Source: Leidyana gryllorum EB-2025a (lineage: Eukaryota > Protista > Apicomplexa). Taken from it: DNA of 64,000 nucleotides. Below, one piece after another: positions 2,908 to 39,137 of the stretch. The translations under genes were made by a program, and so were the position numbers. Positions within the stretch are counted from its first letter, which is position 1. Each line of letters begins with the position of its first letter. The notes beneath the pieces are model-generated. The model ran no database searches and was not told the DNA's origin. It saw only the letters and a program-made list of their open reading frames with translations. The DNA is taken from positions 372,001-436,000 of the forward strand of contig JBLWGC010000043.1 in the NCBI GenBank assembly GCA_048772705.1, written 5' to 3'.

Positions 2908-4042
2908 ATGTGGATGGCACAGTGGCGGCCACTCCTTTTCCGGCTTGCACGTCCATTACTTTACATTTTGGCACCAATAGCACGCATACTGTTGGTGAGC
3001 CCAAATTGATCCATTGCCAAGTCGTTGAGTAGTACTTGATAGAGAACAGCGTGCGAATACTGGGTCGTTGTCTAGTAGGTAGTTGGTTTGACGCTCGCTG
3101 AATCCCTCCTCAGATCGTGCTGGCAGTGGTGCTGATCGCTTTCCTGACCCTTCTAACTCTACGTATCAGGAGAGGATTTTTCTTTGCGCTGCCACATGGG
3201 CCGATCTGCCTGCTGGCTGGGACGTACCTCCTGGTTAATGTGATAGTATCCTACTTCCGCATCGTGACCACTGGTCCAGGATGGGCCCCACTAGCAGATG
3301 TACGTAGTGTGCTTTCGACGGTGAAGTAATCTGAATCTCCAGGAATACCCGTTGGTGCCCTTTCGGATTTGCACTAAGTGTGAGTGAGCATCTGTGGCGT
3401 CGGAATGCTCCACCTTTTAGGCGATCCTGGGCGGTTGCGCGCCCCACGAACACATCATTGCAGTGTCTGTAGCAGATGCGTACGCCGCTTGGATCATCAC
3501 TGCCCTTGGATCAATGGCTGCGTCGGCGAAGATAATTATCATTACTTCCTATCCTTCGTCATGTGGGCCGCAATTGGGGCTATTTACGTTGCGTCACTGT
3601 TACTGTGGCCCTTCTGGGAGATCATCGTACAGGTAAGGGCCTGCGTGTACATTCATCTCCAGCACAGAGCCGGGAGACATTCGGGTCTTTGTCAGACCGC
3701 GAAGAAGAGTTCTTACTACTGGCTTTCAGTCTGTCTTGTGCTGTAAGTCTTGATTATCCTTTCGACATTTACCCAGTTGAGTGTGACGCTGTCCATCCTG
3801 GGCATATTTCACGTTTACCTGACACGGACTAACCGGACAACGCTCGAATTTCATCTACAAATCCCTGTAGACCCGGCGGCACCCACAGTAAGCTGCGGAC
3901 GGTGAGAAGCACACGTGTTCGGCACAAACAGATCGTTGACACTGTGAAAGCAAGTGGTGTTTTTCGGTGGCCTCGCGTTCTGTGGAGCTCTGCAGCAGGT
4001 ATGTTTTCAGACAAGGCTATTCAAAACCCCCTTTGCCCATAG
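2908..4042 (+). CDS. DHHC-type palmitoyltransferase (multi-exon; 3' end approximate)
   Basis: RAPRTHHCSVCSRCVRRLDHHCPWINGCVG..NY.YF cysteine-rich domain, upstream TM helices and TGPG, downstream NRTTLE (TTxE) motif. Confidence 0.92.
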
Positions 4043-29546: not shown

Positions 29547-32500
29547 ATGTTCAGCCAGCAAGGGGGCTTCGGGGCTGCAAACAATGCGTTCGGTCAGCCC
29601 CCCCAACAGTCCACCTCGATGTTCGGACAACCCGCCACAACGCAATCGACCACATCAGGGGGCCTCTTCGGTAACACTTCCAACATCAGTCCCTTCAGCC
29701 AAACCCCGCAACCCAGTAAGTGGTGTATCAGGACGACTTTCAACCCTCTTCTCCCTCACAGCGGCCTCTCCATTCGGCCAGCAGAGTACTTCTGCCTTTG
29801 GTGGCACTAACACCTCAACATTGGGCGGCGGAGGATTATTCGGCCGTCCCTCCACATCCACAACAGGTTCAGGACTTTTTGGCGCCACAACCGCCCCCAC
29901 TAACACTGGCGGTTTGTTCGGCCAGCCTGCTGCTGCGAGTCCTTTAGGAGCCGTCACGCCTCTGGGTAATGTCTCCACCGGAACGGCGGGCTTCAAGCCA
30001 AGTGACATTCATGACTCCACACTTGGCGGTAAAATGACCAATATAATGTCTCTCCCCGCAATCAATGAGAAGAATAAGGTATGCACGACCCTCAATCACT
30101 CTTCTATTACTGTCATTGCCTCAAACTGCAGTCTCTCGATATGCTGAGATGGGAGGATTATCAGAATCCGAATCAAACTAACACCGCCCAAGTGGGAGGA
30201 GGGGGCGTCTTTGGTCAGACTGCAACTCCAGCCACAGGAGGAGGGGGGCTGTTCGGATCCACCAACAACACCTCCAACACCATGCAGGGCGGCCTTTTCG
30301 GAGGCCAAAAGCCCGCCACCGGGGGCCTATTTGGAACCACGAGTACCACCGGTACCACAAGCGGAGGACTATTCGGAGGCCAAACTCAAACTGGAACCGG
30401 CGGACTCTTTGGGAGCACCCCGGCTCAGCCAGCTGCTGGAGGGATGTTCGGAGCTCAAACTCAGAATGCGCCTTCTGCGGGCGGTGGGCTATTTGGGGCC
30501 CAAAACAATGCACAACCGACGACTGGTGGACTCTTTGGCGCTACCAACACTACGAACACCACCGGGAGCAGTGTCTTTGGAGGATTGGGTAACACATCGC
30601 AAACGGGAGGACTATTCGGAAGTACACCCGCAGCCCAGCCACAGGGATTATTGGGTACGGCGACCCCTCAACAGAACACAGGAGGCCTTTTCGGGAGTAC
30701 AAACACTGGAGCCACCGGAGGTCTCTTTGGGGGCGGAGGAACGACTAACACTGGAGGCGTCTTTGGCGGTCAAACGCAGGCGACGGGTGGTCTTTTCGGC
30801 CAAACTGGCCAACAACCCGCCGCAACTGGGGGTCTATTCGGGAGCACCAGCCCTGCACAACAACAACCTGCGACCACAGGCGGTCTGTTTGGCGGACAAG
30901 GAGGAACCACAGGAGGACTGTTCGGCGCCACCGGCACCACAAGCGCGTTCGGAGCACCGAATCAGACGCAGCAGCAGCCCCAAACCGGCGGTGGGCTCTT
31001 CGGAAGCACTACGCAAACTAATACTGGCGGCCTCTTTGGAAGTACGGCTCCCAAGACCGGAGGACTCTTCGGCAGCACCACTCCTACGGCGCCCACCACG
31101 GGCGTGGGTCTCTTTGGCTCGACCGGAACCGCTGGAACGGGCGCGGGCGGTGGCCTGTTCGGTGCGACGACTAATACGGCGCAACCAAGTGGAGGAGGCT
31201 TATTCGGGGCAACTACCACACCCACTACAACGGGAGGCCTTTTCGGCGCCCAAAATAATCAAACGGCCCAGCAGCCGCAGGCAGGCGGAGGGCTTTTCGG
31301 CGCTACGACGACACCCGCGACGGGTGGTCTATTCGGCAATACAGGTGCAGCGGGCACTGCTACTGGCGGTCTGTTCGGGGCCACACAAGGCACCCAACAG
31401 CCCGCCCAGACTACAACGGGCGGACTGTTCGGATCTACGCAACCCAATGCAACGACTGGTGGCCTCTTCGGCTCCACCGGGACGGGCACTGGACAGACTG
31501 GAGGTCTTTTTGGAGGCCAACCAGCTCAACAGCCCGCGGCTACCACCGGGGGTATGTTTGGCAACACCGGCGCCACCGGACTGACCGGGACCGGCACAAC
31601 TGGAGGTTTCTTCGGTAACACCACTCAGCAGGCTGCTGGGCAACAGCCACAGGCCGGCGGTGGAATCTTCGGAGCAACGAACACACAGAACCAAACCGGC
31701 GGGCTCGGTTTCGGGGGCGCCTTTGGTGCCCAGCCCACCACCTCTGCAATGGGCGGAGGTATGTTCGGCAATAACGCCACTCCGTTCGGTGGCCTCCAGC
31801 AGCAGCAGCAGCCACAGCAGCAGCAGCAGCAGCAGAACGCAATGCAACAACAAGGAGGTTTGGGTACTGTCTCTGCTGCGGCCCCACAAATGGGCTTCAA
31901 CGGGATGATGCAACAACAGCCGAATATGAATATGCAGAATATGCAGAATATGGGTCAGTTTGCCCAACCTATGACAGCTTTCCAAGCGGCTTACAGTGGT
32001 CAGTTGGGCCCTCTGATGCCGGGTATGGGCGTAACAGCCGTTTACGGAGCGAGTGGGCCCTTCTTTGCCGGGCTGCCTCCGCCTGATCCATATGGAGTAT
32101 CAAGGCTCGCTGTGGCCAACGCTGCCAGTCTAATTTGGGGTCGACCCTTTACCCCCACAATGCCGAAATCAGAACCCACATTGATTACTGACACCGACAT
32201 CACAAGTCTGAACTGGCGTCCTTTGCCCCGTGGAGGGTACGGAAAGGATACGTCCAAAGAAGCAGCTGCCGCTCCGCGTGAGCCGCAGACCCCGCAGAGA
32301 GCGGCTACACCCCCGATACAGCGTCCGGCTGCGGGAGGAACGGACCGTCCAGTGTCTCCATTCGCCGGCAGTACGGCGGCCTTAGCCAATGAGCCGTCTT
32401 TATCACACCGTCGAGTGTCTGTCCAAGCATCTGGAGCTGAATCTCGCGATGCTGCAACTCCCGAAAACGTATTGGCAGTGGCTCCTGTGGAGTCGACTGC

Positions 32501-35500
32501 AATGGTGCTGGCGCGGCCGTCGGCACAAGACGACTACGTGCCTTGGCTTCAGGCCATAGCGGCCGCCAGTCCGACGGGCAATCGACAAAAGCAATTGGTG
32601 CAAGTAGAAGATTTGACATTGAGTGTAGCCGATCCGTCTGGAGCCGGCAATCGAGTGATCCCCGTTTCGTCTTTGAGGACCACTGCCTCGCGGGTTTTGA
32701 TTCCCAAACTCCGAAATAAGGAGTACAGCACTCGTCCGACCATTGAGGCGCTGTCGGGTTTCACTGAAGCACAACTAGCAGAAGTGCAAGACTTTACCGT
32801 CATACGCGACGGACTGGGCGATGTGGTGTGGCCAGGCTACACTGATGTCCGAGGGCTCGACATTGATCTCATCGTGGACATCACTCAAGGGGCCGTGGAC
32901 GTCTATGGTGCTAAGTGGGAAAAGGAGATGAAGGCTCGAAAAGTTGGAAAGAAGGTTGCTGACCTCACCCCTGAGGAATTGGATTCCATCCCGCTCGAGC
33001 ACCCTACGGTCGGAACTGGACTGAACAAAAAGGCGGTCGTCACCCTTTATAACTGTCTGTAAGTCGATCTAAATGTCACCACTTTGTGTGTCCACAATCC
33101 CCTTCCGCAGTGTCACCTCGGCTGACTATCCGTACCCCGTCTCCTTCTTGGACGTTGTTGAGGCGCTCAAGAGCCATTGCACACAGCTGGGTGCCGAATT
33201 TGTCTCCCTCACTCCGGATTATAAATGGAAGTGAGTTGGCAGAGACGTGTGGGCTCGTTTGGCTAAATGTGTGCTTCTTTTTGACAGGTTCGCGGTTGAG
33301 CACTTCTCTCGGTACGAGTTTCCTCGGCGATATTGGGGTAAGGAGCGGGCCTTGGCGGCGAAAAGGAGGCGACCCCGGCGAATGCAGCTTGATATGAGCT
33401 CACATCTCCTCTGTGAGCGGTTCTCCAAGGCGGAAGGTTTACCCCAAGGCACCCACAAGATGACCAAACTACTCTCGGCTAATCGTGAGCGGTTGGAAAC
33501 AATGCTGGAAATGGCCCAGACTGCTTTCGTGCAGTTACAAAGAATGATGGGCGATGCTCAGAACAAATCAGAGACAGTGAAGAGGTGGATGTCTTCCGGA
33601 GTTGATACCCAACTGGCCCTCAAGCTGCCGGGTGCAGATACTACCGACAAGGATTGGTTACCCCCACCTAATGATTTATGGACCGTCGAAGAGCCCCAAC
33701 AGGGACCCAAAAGAGACTCACGCATACTGCGATTGCTCGATGAGGGAGATACAACAGAACTGTCCGGTGACGGAACGCTCTCACGAGGCGTCCTCCAGCA
33801 TCTAGCCGAACTCATGGCACTCCCACACAGCCGACTCAACAGACTGAGCATCCAGGCACGCATACTGCAGATTGTCAACGCTTTCACCGAACACAAAGTC
33901 GCGGCCTCAGACGACATCGAAGTGTACACCTCAGAGCTGCAATACGGCCTGGCTTTGTTATCACATGGCTCCCGCAAGATGGCTGCCACAACCAAATGGC
34001 TCACTAGACGATGCCTCGAAGAGGCCGAGAAGATATACCCCAATGGCGAGGTCGAACGAGAATCACTCGCCGATAGTTTACGAGCTGCAATGCTTTTCAT
34101 CTTGGCCCAACAGGTAGCCTGTCATACGTCTCAGTAATCCAACTATCGAACACCCTTGCAGGAAGACTGCGCTGCTAATATCCTCATCGGCGAATCCCTG
34201 TCCAACGAGTACACACCCCCGCGTGCGGAGTTAGCTCTGCCTCGCCTGGGCGCTATCGTACAAGCATCCGCTGTCAAGCGACAAGCAATCCCTTCCTTGG
34301 CAGAACAGCTCAAGTCCATTCAATCTGACCCTGCCGCCATGAACGCCTACGACCAATCGGTCTTGGACTTGATGCTTCTTCTGACGGGCCGGATAGACGT
34401 ACGCATGATACTCCGAATGCCCTCATGGCACTTCGTCTTCCAAGCAATCTTGACCTACTCATGTGATGCATCCGGATTGAATTCGCAAACGGATGTTCTC
34501 ATACACACCGAAGTGGTAAGTCATAGGCATCCTTACCTCTCCCTTCCTCCTGAGTCTGGCTCCTGATCACCGGCAAGGTAAGTTGCGCAATGCGCGAAAG
34601 GATATGCACATCCGCGCGTATAAATCTGTGCTCGAGTATCGGCTTTGCACTTAGCGTTGAGCTTTTTGTGCAAGCTCATGTGCACCGATTATGCTCCGAG
34701 GTATCACGCAGCACCCACCGGTTGCACACAGACTGCAATTCTCTCTGCAAATCGGTGCACACGATGTGCATCTCGTGTGCCAAATCCGTGCACACACTTT
34801 GCATCTCGTGTGCCAGTCTCGTGTGCCAATCTCGTGTGCCAATCTCGTGTGCCAATCTCGTGTGCCAATCTCGTGTGCCAGTCTCGTGTGCTAATCTCGT
34901 GTGTCAGTCTCGTTTGTTACTGCCGATCTCGTCTCTCATTCTCGTGTTTGACTTCTGCGTCGTGGTGTAACACGTCACACTCTCGTGTGACTCTCGTGTA
35001 ACACACTCGAGTATCACTCTCCGTGGAAGCCTCTTGTGTGAGTTCTGCTCTTCTCGTGTGCCAAATGGCGTGTGACTCGTGTGTCAGGTGCCCATGTCTC
35101 GTATGTGCCATCTCTCACAGTATGTGCCATCTCTCACAGTGTGTGCCATCTCTCACAGTGTGTGCCAACTCCCGCACTGTGTGTGCCAACTCCCGCACTG
35201 TGTGTGCCAACTCCCGCACTGTGTGTGCCAACTCCCGCACTGTGTGTGCCAACTCCCGCACTGTGTGTGCCAACCCTCACAGTGTGTGCCAAGCCGCACA
35301 GGGTGTGCCAACTCCCGCACTGTGTGTGCCGTCTCTGACCAAGTGTCATTTTGTCGTCACTTCCTCATCTTCCGAGTGGGTTCCCCATTGTCTGGGTTGT
35401 ATTGTTTTGGGCACATCGGTGCTAATCCCTTGTGTCTCTCCGCGCTTCACGGTCCGTTCCTTCACTCCTCTTGTGCTTCAAGTCCTGTTTAATTTCCGCT

Positions 35501-38500
35501 ATCTTGTTGCTTTTCTATGTCGCGTGCAACCCTACATTCGTTTGTGTGTCGGTCCTGTAGTCGGTGGTCACCTTCTCGCTGCTGAGTGGGTGACCTCCCA
35601 GGACGCGCGTCTCTTCTACTTTCGTCGTTCCCCACCCGTGTGCTGTGAGGGTTGTGACAAATGTCGTCGGCCTCGTATTTTACTGGCCCTGTGTCAGCTC
35701 CACTTTTGTGCTTGTCGTTGGTTCACCGATCGTTTGTCTTGTTTGGTATCTGTTGTACCTTATCTTTCACTTCTTACCGCCCTCTCTCACGTGTCTATGG
35801 GCACTTCACGTTTTGAGGTGGCGTCGGTGCTCATGGGACCGTGCCACCAATTGGGAGATGGTGATCGCGAGGCTGAATATCGAGGCTGTTGGCGACTGCG
35901 AAGCTTAAGGTACTGTACATCTCTGGGGCATGAAGACTGACTTTAATGGTGCCGTTTGTGCTTCCCGGCGAATGTTATCGATACGAGAGGACAGCTTGCC
36001 CGTCGTTGGGCGACTCAGGATTTGTGCAAAAGCCATTTTGCACGAATCCATAGCACTAGTCGCCTATGCACCGAGCGTGCACGGCTGGATGCACATTTGA
36101 GGATCAACTATCGTAAATGAGGGGTCTCGAGGAACATGAAGAGGTTGGGAAGTTCTCCATCCCAACGATCTCAATCCTTCGATTGAGTAGCTGGCTCAGC
36201 TTGAAATAAGAAATCGGCACATAATGATGCATCTGGAGACCAATCAAACTTTCTAACGCAAAGAGTCAATGGTGGTGTGTTGGTGACACGAGCCAGAAAT
36301 TGCAAGTGGATTGTGCTGACGGGGGTTCGGTTGTACACTGTGACGATGTAAGAGACAGACGGGCCGCCTGGTTACAAACCTGTGTGATACCCGTGGATGA
36401 GGGCTGGTGGTGGATGAAGGCTCATGGGCCGTCTCTGTCTCTAGGAGGCACAAGACGCGCAGAGAGGCGCATTTGCACACTGCTCATAGTGCCACGCGCA
36501 GACAGCGCACGCCATGCGCACAAGACACATAGTGGGCAAGCAAAAGTATTGCGCGGCTGATGCGCTATGCTAATGGGATAGGTGCATCTCAGTGTCAAGC
36601 ACTCTGCAGATGAGAAGCACAATGATCTGATTATCAGTCTTGTGTGCGCACATTCGGTGCGCTAATGCACCGAGTGCGGGTTGCAAACTGTGATTATATC
36701 ATGCGCAGAACTTGCGTAGAGTTCGCGCAGCATGAAAACTCTGTCGCAAATCCATTGCTCACAGCCGTGCATTTATGCTATGCACTGTGATCCAGACACA
36801 GTGGATCTTGCGTGGAGCCGGTCTAAGATGATCAATCAATACTGTGTCCTGACAAGTTGCTCTGACCTAGGAGGGCAAGTCGATGATTAGGAGCCAGGAC
36901 GTCCAACTTTCTGTTGCCTCTCCCCTATCTTCCCATTTCCCACATTTGCTAATGATTTCTTTGTTTCCAGTTGCGCGAGGCTTTGAGGCAATTCGATAAT
37001 TTGATGCTGATGTTGTCTGAGCTCCCTTCGGATGCGCGGCCACGATGGAGAGACGCATTTCAACGCCACACCCCGTGGGACTTTCTGCTTTTGAAGTAAG
37101 TTGTTTGATGGTTTGGAGTTCGGCAGTATGTGGTTATGACTCTGTTCAGGGTGACGGCAGGTGCAATGACCATTTCAGAGTTCGCTCGAAGTTTGGTCCC
37201 ACCTGTATCGAGTTCTGAACGTGAGAAAGAAGTCGCTCGGTTGGCAGCTTTAACGGGAGTCGTGATTGCGGGGCTGATTGAGACGCAAGCACATCTAAAA
37301 CGTGAGTCGATTAGGTTGTATTCAGATGGTTTGTGTCTTTAAAGAGAGCACTGTCCTGGAGTTTCTTGGCCAATTGGCATCACTATTCGAAAAAGGTAGT
37401 TGGTCCGATCGAAGACGGATCGAAGATCTATGGCGAGGCTGTATGGACTATGCAGTGGACTTACCGTGGAATTACACGGTCATTTGGGAGATAGTATCGG
37501 GGATAGTGTCCGGCAAAGAGGCGGAGAGCACCCTGAACCACGTTCAGACTGCTCTCGGAGAGCACGTGTCCGCAAAAGAGTTGGAGAGTCTGGAGGTCGT
37601 GTGTCTGGGTGGGGGGCGGGAAGGAGTGAGTGATGCCATGGAGGATTTGGTGGGGACGCTCGGTTTCCCTGAAGTGTTTGTGGTAGCGGCGATGGCAAAG
37701 TGCTTAAGCAATAACTCTCTGATGGTGGCACAGCTGTGGTGGGCAGCCTATGTGCGTTGTTCCACTGAGCCACAGGGTTTCGGAGGTCATTCCCCTCATC
37801 GAGAAACTTCGTGGTACCGGACATTGATGCAGAAGTGTCACGCTCCGGGCGAGTTTGTCAAGTCGGCGGGTGGATGTGTGTTGAAAGTTATAGAGTCACT
37901 GACTGTTCGTCCGTCGTCTTATTTGCCGACGTTGGTGAAGAACATATGGAGTCTGTCATTCTGCGACCTGAGTGCTTTGCCGCAGATGGCTCTGACAGTG
38001 CATAATTGCAGCCGTATTGACATGGGGAAGTGGCTGACAGAGACTTTCTTTGACATGCTGACACGTAACTATCTGAACACAGCTTTGCCGTATGACTTGG
38101 TGCAAATTGTGGAGGGAGTAGCGGTCGTTGGTCACGAGAGATTCGCGAGTTTATATTGGATTGACGGCTGTCCGTTTGTGACGAAGGACAGATTCCGGAG
38201 ACGTGGGGTAGACACTTTGAGTGTGGCGGATGTGGAAGAAGACGGAGAGTGGCGGCTGATCTACGAGGAATATTACACCAAAGGGGGAGTTCCTTTGACT
38301 CAGTATTTGGTGTGGATAAAGAATACGCTGAGTCTGATATATTGCGAGCAGACGGAGATGATGGACGCAGATTTGAAGCTGTTGACGGCGGATGGGAAAG
38401 TGGCGTTCGAGAAGCTGGAAGGACAGGCGCGGTTCAGCGAGGCCTATGAGGCGACGAACGCTGCGTTGGATTTGTTGGAGACGCCTGAGAGTGTATCTTT

Positions 38501-39086
38501 CATAGCGATGGCCGACGCCTTGGCAAAGCGAGACGACTTTGTGCGGGGCGCGAATGAACCAGCAGTGAACAGAGAGTTGTATGCCAAGTTGGAGGAGATG
38601 GAGAAGCAGCGGCTGCCGACTGACACGTGGATGAGTATCGACTTTTGGAAATGGGTCAACAGCACCGAGTTGTTCCTGAATTACCTTCGGAACCCTCATT
38701 TGTGGTCGCGGGCGGATGACTACACTCGAGAGGTGATCAGTTCAATTCGAGTGCAAGTGTGGTTCATCTACACTGTGGCCATCATGATGGCCAACACTGC
38801 TGCCAAATATCCGCCGCCCTCAGCGAGAGGTCGTCGCCCTCCAATGTCGAACCCCGGGAGCAGCGTGAGTGTGCTGCCGGGCGCGTCGTCCCCGGCGGGT
38901 GTGCAGGATGTGATCACTGAAGAGAAACTCGTGAGGGAGTTTGGACTCGTCAAAGAGTGGGACTACAGTGGCAAGGACGGAGAGGAAGTTGGATTGAGAC
39001 GGCCGCGAAACACGCAGGGCGTTGAGCGGTTGCTGGAAGGGTGTTTCAGATATCTGAATATTCGTGTGGATGCTCGGCGTCTTTGA
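29547..39086 (+). CDS. NUP98: Nup98-Nup96 nucleoporin polyprotein (multi-exon; includes giant intron 34516-36970)
   Basis: About 30 GLFG repeats; GLEBS-like motif (NIMSLP...SLDMLRWEDY); autoprotease domain (YSTRPT...GLNKKAVVTLYNC...WKFAVEHFSRY) with HF/S at 33301-33309; helical Nup96-like remainder joined in frame across 34515/36971 (HTEV-LREALRQF). Confidence 0.88.
34804..34907 (+). repeat. Tandem array of 8 x 13 bp (TCTCGTGTGCCAA)
   Basis: Eight consecutive near-identical units with degenerate copies on both flanks. Confidence 0.95.
35101..35330 (+). repeat. Tandem array of 19/21-bp units (GTRTGTGCCATCTCTCACA x3; GTGTGTGCCAACTCCCGCACT x5 plus variants)
   Basis: Read directly; shares the TGTGCCA core with the 13-bp array. 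Confidence 0.95.
35990..36810 (+). ncRNA. Candidate structured intronic RNA segment (hairpin cluster), family unknown
   Basis: Hairpins at 36018-36049, 36144-36166, 36170-36187, 36189-36201, 36648-36677, 36702-36729 and 36783-36803, some with G-U pairs on the + strand. Confidence 0.4.
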
Positions 39087-39137
39087 ATGTGGAAAAAAAC
39101 TTTGACTTGTTTGTGAGAAATAGCGCGCGAGCGAGAA

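Follow-up and report, generated by a model that had tools for sequence, protein, structure and literature searches.

How can an essential nuclear-pore gene of a gregarine tolerate an intron of 2.5 kb, and how is that intron removed, when gregarine genomes are gene-dense and have very small introns (PMC9250747)? The intron in question occupies positions 34516 to 36970 of a 64,000-nt stretch of Leidyana gryllorum EB-2025a DNA (contig JBLWGC010000043.1, positions 372,001 to 436,000, forward strand; here called the window) and interrupts a Nup98-96-like gene. A first-pass annotation of the window had pointed to a second complete GT...AG unit lying just inside two complementary arms within this intron. 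We examined that unit computationally and propose, with a little less than even confidence, that the inner 2293 nt entered an ordinary ~160-nt intron as an insertion of noncoding DNA with intron-like signals at its ends.

The host gene was modeled with seven exons that together form a single open frame of 2098 codons, running from 30081 to a stop at 39086. This frame check was run locally by script, and homology and fold searches took the exons one at a time. The introns are, in order, 52, 57, 48, 2455, 54, and 43 nt long, so that the fourth is a 40- to 50-fold length outlier relative to its sisters (43 to 57 nt). These six introns were checked by hand and served as the splice-site reference; automated intron calls in the window were too noisy for matrices. 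The fourth is also the longest non-coding-like stretch in the window, about 4 times the length of the next longest (544 nt). Its parts and immediate flanks are as follows.

34162 to 34515, plus strand: upstream exon of the Nup98-96-like gene, ending in phase 0 (...ACC GAA GTG), with a positive coding score.
34516 to 36970, plus strand: outer intron, 2455 nt (GTAAGT...CTAAT...CAG).
34516 to 34577, plus strand: 5′ outer piece, 62 nt, a complete intron candidate of normal size with GTAAGT, a pyrimidine tract, CTGAT, and an AAG acceptor.
34556 to 34574, plus strand: left arm of the inverted repeat, complementary to the right arm.
34578 to 36870, plus strand: inner unit, 2293 nt, with a consensus donor at its start and a branch/acceptor motif at its end.
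36849 to 36870, plus strand: inner branch/acceptor region, with CTGAC at 36849 to 36853 and again at 36862 to 36866 and a TAG ending at 36870.
36871 to 36970, plus strand: 3′ outer piece, pyrimidine-rich and 100 nt long; it contains CTAAT at 36949 to 36953 and CAG at 36968 to 36970.
36879 to 36897, plus strand: right arm of the inverted repeat, complementary to the left arm.
36971 to 37095, plus strand: downstream exon (LREALRQF...), which keeps the frame of the upstream exon.

Both pairs of splice sites can be read directly from the sequence. The outer donor is GAAGTG/GTAAGT at 34516 (a slash marks the splice junction), and the outer acceptor, preceded by a CTAAT branch motif and a pyrimidine tract of 55 nt, ends TTTGTTTCCAG/ at 36970. 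The inner donor at 34578 reads CCGGCAAG/GTAAGT, that is, AAG/GTAAGT, and the inner unit ends CTGAC..CTGACCTAG at 36870. Between the outer and inner sites lie the arms, which begin 40 nt and end 73 nt from the respective ends of the outer intron and which stand 3 nt (AAG) from the inner donor on the left and 8 nt (GAGGGCAA) from the inner acceptor on the right. The 62 nt to the left of the inner donor have their pyrimidine tract at 34533 to 34550 and CTGAT at 34562 to 34566, 12 nt before the AAG acceptor; a sister intron of the same gene (37302 to 37344) likewise uses AAG. An in-frame TGA lies at 34564 to 34566 of the outer intron.

The arms form a 19-nt duplex of 16 Watson-Crick pairs, 2 G-U pairs, and 1 C-A mismatch. 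Across the computed thermodynamic ensemble of the full 2515-nt transcript, their predicted probability of pairing is 0.90 to 1.00, and deletion of the 2293-nt unit leaves 162 nt that fold at -43.0 kcal/mol into the arm helix closed by the loop AAGGAGGGCAA. As modeled, complementary segments toward the two ends of the intron would thus pair and shorten its effective length, in the manner of an intron zipper. All of the positions in the first-pass annotation were correct, and its description of a donor just past the left arm, a CTGAC branch/acceptor just before the right one, a 162-nt hairpin remainder with this loop, and a stop that bars use of the inner sites alone was borne out at every point.

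We then considered how readily such a layout could arise by chance. GTAAGT occurs 18 times on the plus strand of the 64 kb and, within the intron, only at 34516 and 34578. Acceptor-like ends of the form CTRAY..YAG occur at 0.0016 per nt, and the inner acceptor is one of seven in the whole intron. The joint probability that a donor and an acceptor-like end each fall no more than 10 nt inside an arm is ~0.0028 x 0.016, or ~5e-5, a post hoc figure that precedes any correction for multiple tests. A comparable arm duplex between both flanks was found in 10 of 2000 shuffles, and an inverted repeat this good anywhere in the intron is not rare as DNA (blastn E = 0.75). The arms are therefore unusual by their position and not by the quality of the repeat.

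The inner unit itself is single copy. The whole unit and each of its halves returned only self-matches in the 15.5-Mb assembly, which holds neither another copy nor an autonomous partner, and an Rfam search of the unit gave nothing at E values up to 1. Codon-usage scores were negative in six frames, and the open stretches of the unit contain no Pfam match and no transposase remnant. A protein gene nested in the unit was ruled out by this lack of coding signal and of Pfam matches in all six frames; a decayed tandem duplication was also ruled out, since the intron resembles neither the neighboring exons nor the rest of the window. What the unit does contain is a succession of distinct segments.

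34578 to 34800, no strand assigned: left TGCRC/GYGCA-rich palindromic module, 14 motif matches in 223 nt, fold z-score -2.89.
34748 to 34913, no strand assigned: minisatellites, comprising a 33-nt repeat (2.1 copies) and the 13-nt ATCTCGTGTGCCA (8.5 copies).
35101 to 35330, no strand assigned: 19-nt and 21-nt minisatellite arrays with a TGTGCCA core.
35341 to 35900, plus strand: unique tract, A-poor, T-rich, and AG-poor, part of a zone spanning 34716 to 35815.
35901 to 36870, no strand assigned: right TGCRC/GYGCA-rich module with many short hairpins and 25 motif matches.

The composition of the unit changes sharply at its edges. TGCRC/GYGCA motifs begin 6 nt past the inner donor and run to 90 nt before the inner acceptor, at a density of 63 per kb in the left module and 26 per kb in the right module; the rest of the window has 2.7 per kb and its other noncoding runs have 1.9 per kb. 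The motif is absent from both outer pieces and almost absent from the middle of the unit. Fold z-scores for the right module were -3.35 on the plus strand and -2.54 on the minus strand, and because both strands fold better than shuffled sequence, palindromes at the level of DNA are favored over a strand-specific RNA. The 1.1-kb zone from 34716 to 35815 has 9 to 17% A, 14 GT per 100 nt, and 0 to 3 AG per 100 nt (6.3 in the window as a whole), and is in effect an AG-exclusion zone 3′ of both donors.

How could such a block have come to lie between two splice signals? The first-pass annotation had left three options: two-step nested splicing, recursive splicing, or an inserted element equipped with splice sites of its own. 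The last of these fits the anatomy best, given the length outlier, the sharp edges, and the inverted repeat that brackets the unit, and from these features we infer an insertion event. The segments at 34556 to 34574 and 36879 to 36897 have the form of terminal inverted repeats (19 bp, 16/19 complementary as DNA) and are the only significant end-to-end inverted match. The target may have been the tip of a 40-nt palindrome, or the 19-bp inverted repeats may have arrived as the termini of the insert. The junctions can be read as a seamless GT...AG insert at a proto-splice-like CAAG/GA site or, alternatively, as flanked by a 6-bp direct repeat, GGCAAG, at 34572 and 36874. If GGCAAG is a duplication, the empty site would have been an 18-bp stem with a CAAG loop, with insertion at the tip of the palindrome. 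An empty allele of ~160 nt would be expected to read ...CACCGGCAAGTCGATG... or ...GGCAAGGAGGGCAAG....

Under the insertion reading, the arms of the transcript would pair, confining the insert to a closed loop. Within each pair of splice sites, inner and outer, the helix would reduce the distance to ~100 nt or less, a range that a spliceosome used to introns of 45 to 60 nt could be expected to manage. Four routes can be envisaged. A single step may remove the whole intron (34516 to 36970); the inner unit, 34578 to 36870, may be removed first and the 162-nt hairpin remainder second; or the 62-nt mini-intron (34516 to 34577) and the remainder from 34578 to 36970 may be removed in either order, the two abutting at a zero-length exon. 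In the fourth route the acceptors at 34577 and 36870 would both be used, which would leave 100 nt in the mRNA and shift the frame. By frame logic the first three yield identical mRNA. The arm helix favors the first and second, because it is for these that both pairs of sites fall within ~100 nt; the third removes the left arm. On the sequence evidence, detectable use of the inner pair is possible, leaning toward improbable, whereas an obligatory role for it is doubtful.

Several observations weigh against the insertion reading or against use of the inner sites. The inner acceptor has no long pyrimidine tract of the kind seen at the outer acceptor, and the inner sites are partly a liability, given the frameshifted product of the fourth route. 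A rival junction repeat, the 8-bp AGTTGCGC at 34581 and 36969, implies other insertion boundaries. The flanks outside the arms, CCTCCTGAGT and GACGTCCAAC, share no direct repeat of 2 to 10 bp that could be a target-site duplication; the only junction repeats, GGCAAG and AGTTGCGC, are internal. Nor do the arms mark the ends of a genomic repeat family, their pattern occurring at chance level. As there is neither a target-site duplication outside the arms nor a repeat family to which the arms belong, a transposon origin is unproven. No haplotig lacking the inner unit was found in the assembly when it was searched via the flanking exon, and a word search with the 579-amino-acid exon found no orthologue. 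Finally, the TGCRC modules of this genome (those outside the locus are described below) have motif content alone in common, with no alignable homology between them.

The rival junction deserves a closer description. AGTTGCGC follows the GTA of the inner donor and recurs across the outer acceptor/exon junction (34581 to 34593 and 36969 to 36981), where the two copies match at 8 of 8 positions, or at 11 of 13 when extended; the chance of such a match is ~0.6 to 4%, depending on the number of site pairs allowed. If this were the true junction, the ancestral intron would have been 67 nt long, ending GGTAAG/TTGCGC (alternatively written GGTAAG/TTGCGCGAGG), and the insert would have brought the right arm along.

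Relatives of the host gene were sought further. An exhaustive search gave three matches at an E value of 4e-5 or weaker, all of which were rejected as spurious non-nucleoporins (two FG-GAP repeats and one secretion-sorting tail), and metagenome pattern and protein scans for a relative of the host gene found nothing. The neighboring glutamyl-tRNA synthetase gene (GluRS) has its closest matches in gregarines (Gregarina sp. and Blabericola), at only 59% identity, which marks the genome as that of a gregarine-type apicomplexan whose close relatives have not been sequenced. On the contig of one such relative, the genes upstream of GluRS have no similarity to the Nup98-96-like gene; on that of a second, GluRS begins 384 nt from the contig end, which makes an upstream comparison impossible.

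Of the rival explanations, the one that survives best is that the inner GTAAGT and CTGACCTAG are decoy motifs, never or rarely used, in an ordinary long intron, all of which (34516 to 36970) is excised in a single reaction. The outer sites are no weaker than the inner ones, the arm helix would aid both pairs equally, the genome shows no enrichment of the tandem GTAAGT..AGGTAAGT layout, and the other introns inspected that contain a TGCRC module have no second donor. Set against this, decoys would have to account for a donor and a branch/acceptor lying flush with the arms, 3 and 8 nt away, at the chance of ~5e-5 given above. Moreover, an idle AAG/GTAAGT placed 62 nt past the true donor would compete for the acceptor and would then include the in-frame stop at 34564 to 34566, and selection should erode such a site. 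We consider the decoy explanation unlikely as it stands. If it is nonetheless correct and the inner sites are unused, the locus is merely an unusual long intron.

A second possibility is recursive splicing from the 5′ end, in which the 62-nt piece would be excised once transcribed and the regenerated GTG/GTAAGT would pair with the acceptor at 36970. This piece has all of the local intron features and a normal length; AAG/GTAAGT fits the recursive consensus (Y)nNCAG/GTAAGT save for A in place of C (PMC5126111); the regenerated donor would equal the original from -3 to +6; and the two steps would give the correct mRNA in either order. Excision of the piece would, however, take the left arm with it, so that the helix predicted above would be lost for the 2393-nt second step, and a ratchet so near the start of the intron gives no useful subdivision. 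Any later use of the acceptor at 36870 would result in a frameshifted mRNA. The pattern is also not recurrent: GTAAGT-N35-65-AGGTAAGT had 6 matches in the 15.5-Mb assembly, versus 6 for a reversed control. Nested and recursive splicing, the other two options of the first-pass annotation, are mechanistically possible, with routes that restore the mRNA, and have no counterpart in a recurrent tandem arrangement in this genome. We regard 5′ recursive splicing here as improbable.

A third rival turns to the motif-rich modules and supposes that the intron holds a regulatory or transcription unit, either an internal promoter for the C-terminal 660 codons (from the ATG at 37004) or a nested noncoding gene, with TGCRC clusters as candidate protein-binding sites, for instance for ApiAP2-type factors. 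Known ApiAP2-type motifs include GTGCA. TGCRC is 8-fold enriched, in both orientations and at both ends of the unit, and a TATAAAT lies at 34620, inside the left module. A search of the genome with a triple-TGCAC pattern found ~20 other non-tandem clusters, which coincide with noncoding gaps of 250 to 550 nt, and at least one of them lies between apparently divergent genes. Most noncoding gaps in the window nevertheless lack the motif, at the background density of 1.9 per kb, so it is no general promoter mark, and two of the other clusters sit within introns too small for a gene. The inner unit has no open reading frame with a coding signal and no known RNA, and a regulatory unit would leave the flush splice signals unexplained. 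We judge this explanation quite improbable.

The clusters inspected elsewhere are relevant to the insertion reading as well, and include the following.

L029:3780-4260, L032:3640-4030, and L037:4090-4230: TGCRC/GYGCA-rich palindromic modules of 250 to 500 nt in noncoding gaps.
L032:3387-4172 (G000:C202, about 280386-281171): intron of 786 nt in a CK2-beta-like gene.

The CK2-beta-like gene is split by its 786-nt intron between ...FCSLRGHEILVE and VDNEFIQDGFNLYGL, and the intron contains a TGCAC cluster. Its TGCAC-rich core is bracketed by a perfect 15-nt inverted repeat (3656 to 3670 and 3962 to 3976) and by an outer one of 19 to 22 nt, so that it appears to be a second long intron closed by end-to-end pairing. 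Another TGCAC cluster lies inside a 255-nt intron. None of the other inspected introns with TGCRC modules has a second donor, and the flush inner splice signals are peculiar to the Nup98-96-like locus. Over-long introns of this genome are thus accompanied by a kind of sequence of which the inner block is the largest representative. The modules could be clusters of protein-binding sites, decayed foldback elements, or sequences that compact RNA.

A stronger form of the insertion reading would take the inner block to be a self-contained "intron cassette," that is, a mobile or once-mobile unit with full splice signals, an inverted-repeat RNA zipper, and obligatory two-step splicing, of which the modules bracketed by inverted repeats in other over-long introns would be older, decayed relatives. 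We regard this form as improbable. If true, it would mean that a spliceosome tuned to introns of ~50 nt tolerates kilobase insertions and that Apicomplexa have an introner-like system. Should the arms and the inner sites be in use, the locus would offer a natural test of splicing that is nested or assisted by structure in an organism that relies on intron definition, would reveal how DNA that has been inserted can become, or remain, spliceable, and would hint for the first time at intron-like mobile DNA in Apicomplexa.

The weakest rival, that two genes are present, one ending at the TGA at 34564 to 34566 and the other starting at the in-frame ATG at 37004, 11 codons past the acceptor, with 2.4 kb of intergenic DNA between them, would accommodate right-hand exons whose membership in Nup96 is not given by sequence, as they have no detectable homologue or Pfam domain, and is nonetheless very improbable, given a consensus donor and an excellent branch point, pyrimidine tract, and CAG at a phase-0 join that keeps the 2098-codon frame, a Nup96 part of only ~390 residues if the right-hand exons are left out, and other spacers in the window of no more than 544 nt. 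We treat the locus as one gene because of the splice consensus, the open frame, and the short Nup96 that would otherwise result.

Identification of the host gene comes from its upstream exons. The open reading frame at 30081 to 33058 encodes FG repeats and the first two-thirds of an S59 autopeptidase domain by Pfam, and exon 3 contains the HF/S autocleavage motif. To the right of the giant intron, the exons have no homologue, Pfam domain, or match in the Protein Data Bank (PDB) or the ESM atlas, and a single-sequence AlphaFold model of the right-hand exon had a pLDDT of 37 and was unusable. Known Nup96/Nup145C proteins are roughly 700 to 900 residues long. In this protein, ~1060 residues follow the HF/S site (33288 to 39086), and a search of 1.84 billion representative proteins detected no relative of theirs. 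If these residues are Nup96, their sequence is extremely divergent.

Other features of the surroundings can be noted briefly. About 88% of the window scores as coding, and only 51 nt (39087 to 39137) separate the nucleoporin stop from the ATG of the glutamyl-tRNA synthetase. An 11-nt core, CTCGTGTGCCA, is common to minisatellites in introns of unrelated genes, at 34803 to 34913 in the window and on contig C133. The CTCGTGTGCCA arrays have units of 13 nt in the window and 20 nt at L002:1493-1602 (G000:C133:153149-153243), and the core otherwise occurs at chance frequency genome-wide. Elsewhere, a 2.2-kb intron on the minus strand (L028:2447-4619; G000:C43, about 287446-289618) contains a same-strand open reading frame of 668 codons, which begins 14 nt past the donor of its host (GTGAGAACAGAGAGATG). 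This frame leaves no room for a promoter and so resembles an alternative, retained-intron coding exon more than a nested gene.

We compared the locus with five systems in which splicing copes with nested, inserted, or long intervening DNA. Among them are the stwintrons of filamentous fungi, including the "internally symmetrical" sisters of the Hypoxylaceae, which likewise consist of a canonical U2-type intron nested in another; in these, a splice signal of the outer intron (donor, branch point, or acceptor) is split by the inner one, so that two steps are obligatory (PMC8469720, PMC6616335). The likeness extends to inverted repeats that draw donor and acceptor together and to a seamless integration with no obvious target-site duplication. 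Here, in contrast, the outer donor (34516 to 34521), the CTAAT, and the CAG are intact, and removal in one step would be possible. The repeats lie outside the inner splice sites rather than inside them, as in stwintrons, and the unit is a single copy of 2.3 kb instead of a member of a sister family of ~100 to 200 nt. We rejected identity with stwintrons, as the inner unit at 34578 to 36870 interrupts no outer splice signal, and for the same reason the term "twintron-like," which the first-pass annotation had offered, does not hold in its strict sense.

The recursive sites of Drosophila and vertebrates are conserved and subdivide introns of tens to hundreds of kilobases (PMC5126111). As at those sites, an acceptor here abuts a donor within the intron (AAG/GTAAGT), and splicing would regenerate the original 5′ splice site; the junction at 34577/34578 has the recursive form with AAG in place of CAG. 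It differs in its position: the intron is 2.5 kb long and the site only 62 nt into it, which gives no useful subdivision.

Introners come as introns of similar sequence, grouped in families of 5 to >2000 copies with median lengths between 30 and 654 nt, and they create new introns in exons (PMC9860276, PMC12130899). The inner unit resembles them in being noncoding DNA with inverted repeats at its ends and in carrying splice signals, with GTAAGT from its first base and CTGACCTAG to its last. It was rejected as an introner, being a single copy of 2.3 kb inside an existing intron.

Two further systems supply the remaining parallels. In long yeast introns (~300 to 500 nt), zipper stems form in the region that separates the 5′ splice site from the branch point. 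There, as in our model of the Nup98-96-like intron, a long-range helix shortens the distance between splice signals; the difference is that the yeast helix has this placement within a single intron. The maize Ds/dSpm elements are multicopy transposons with target-site duplications that are spliced out via sites near their ends. They show the same tolerance of an inserted element through splice sites near its termini, and differ in being recognizable multicopy elements with target-site duplications. The locus most resembles a spliceable, transposon-like insertion combined with a zipper helix.

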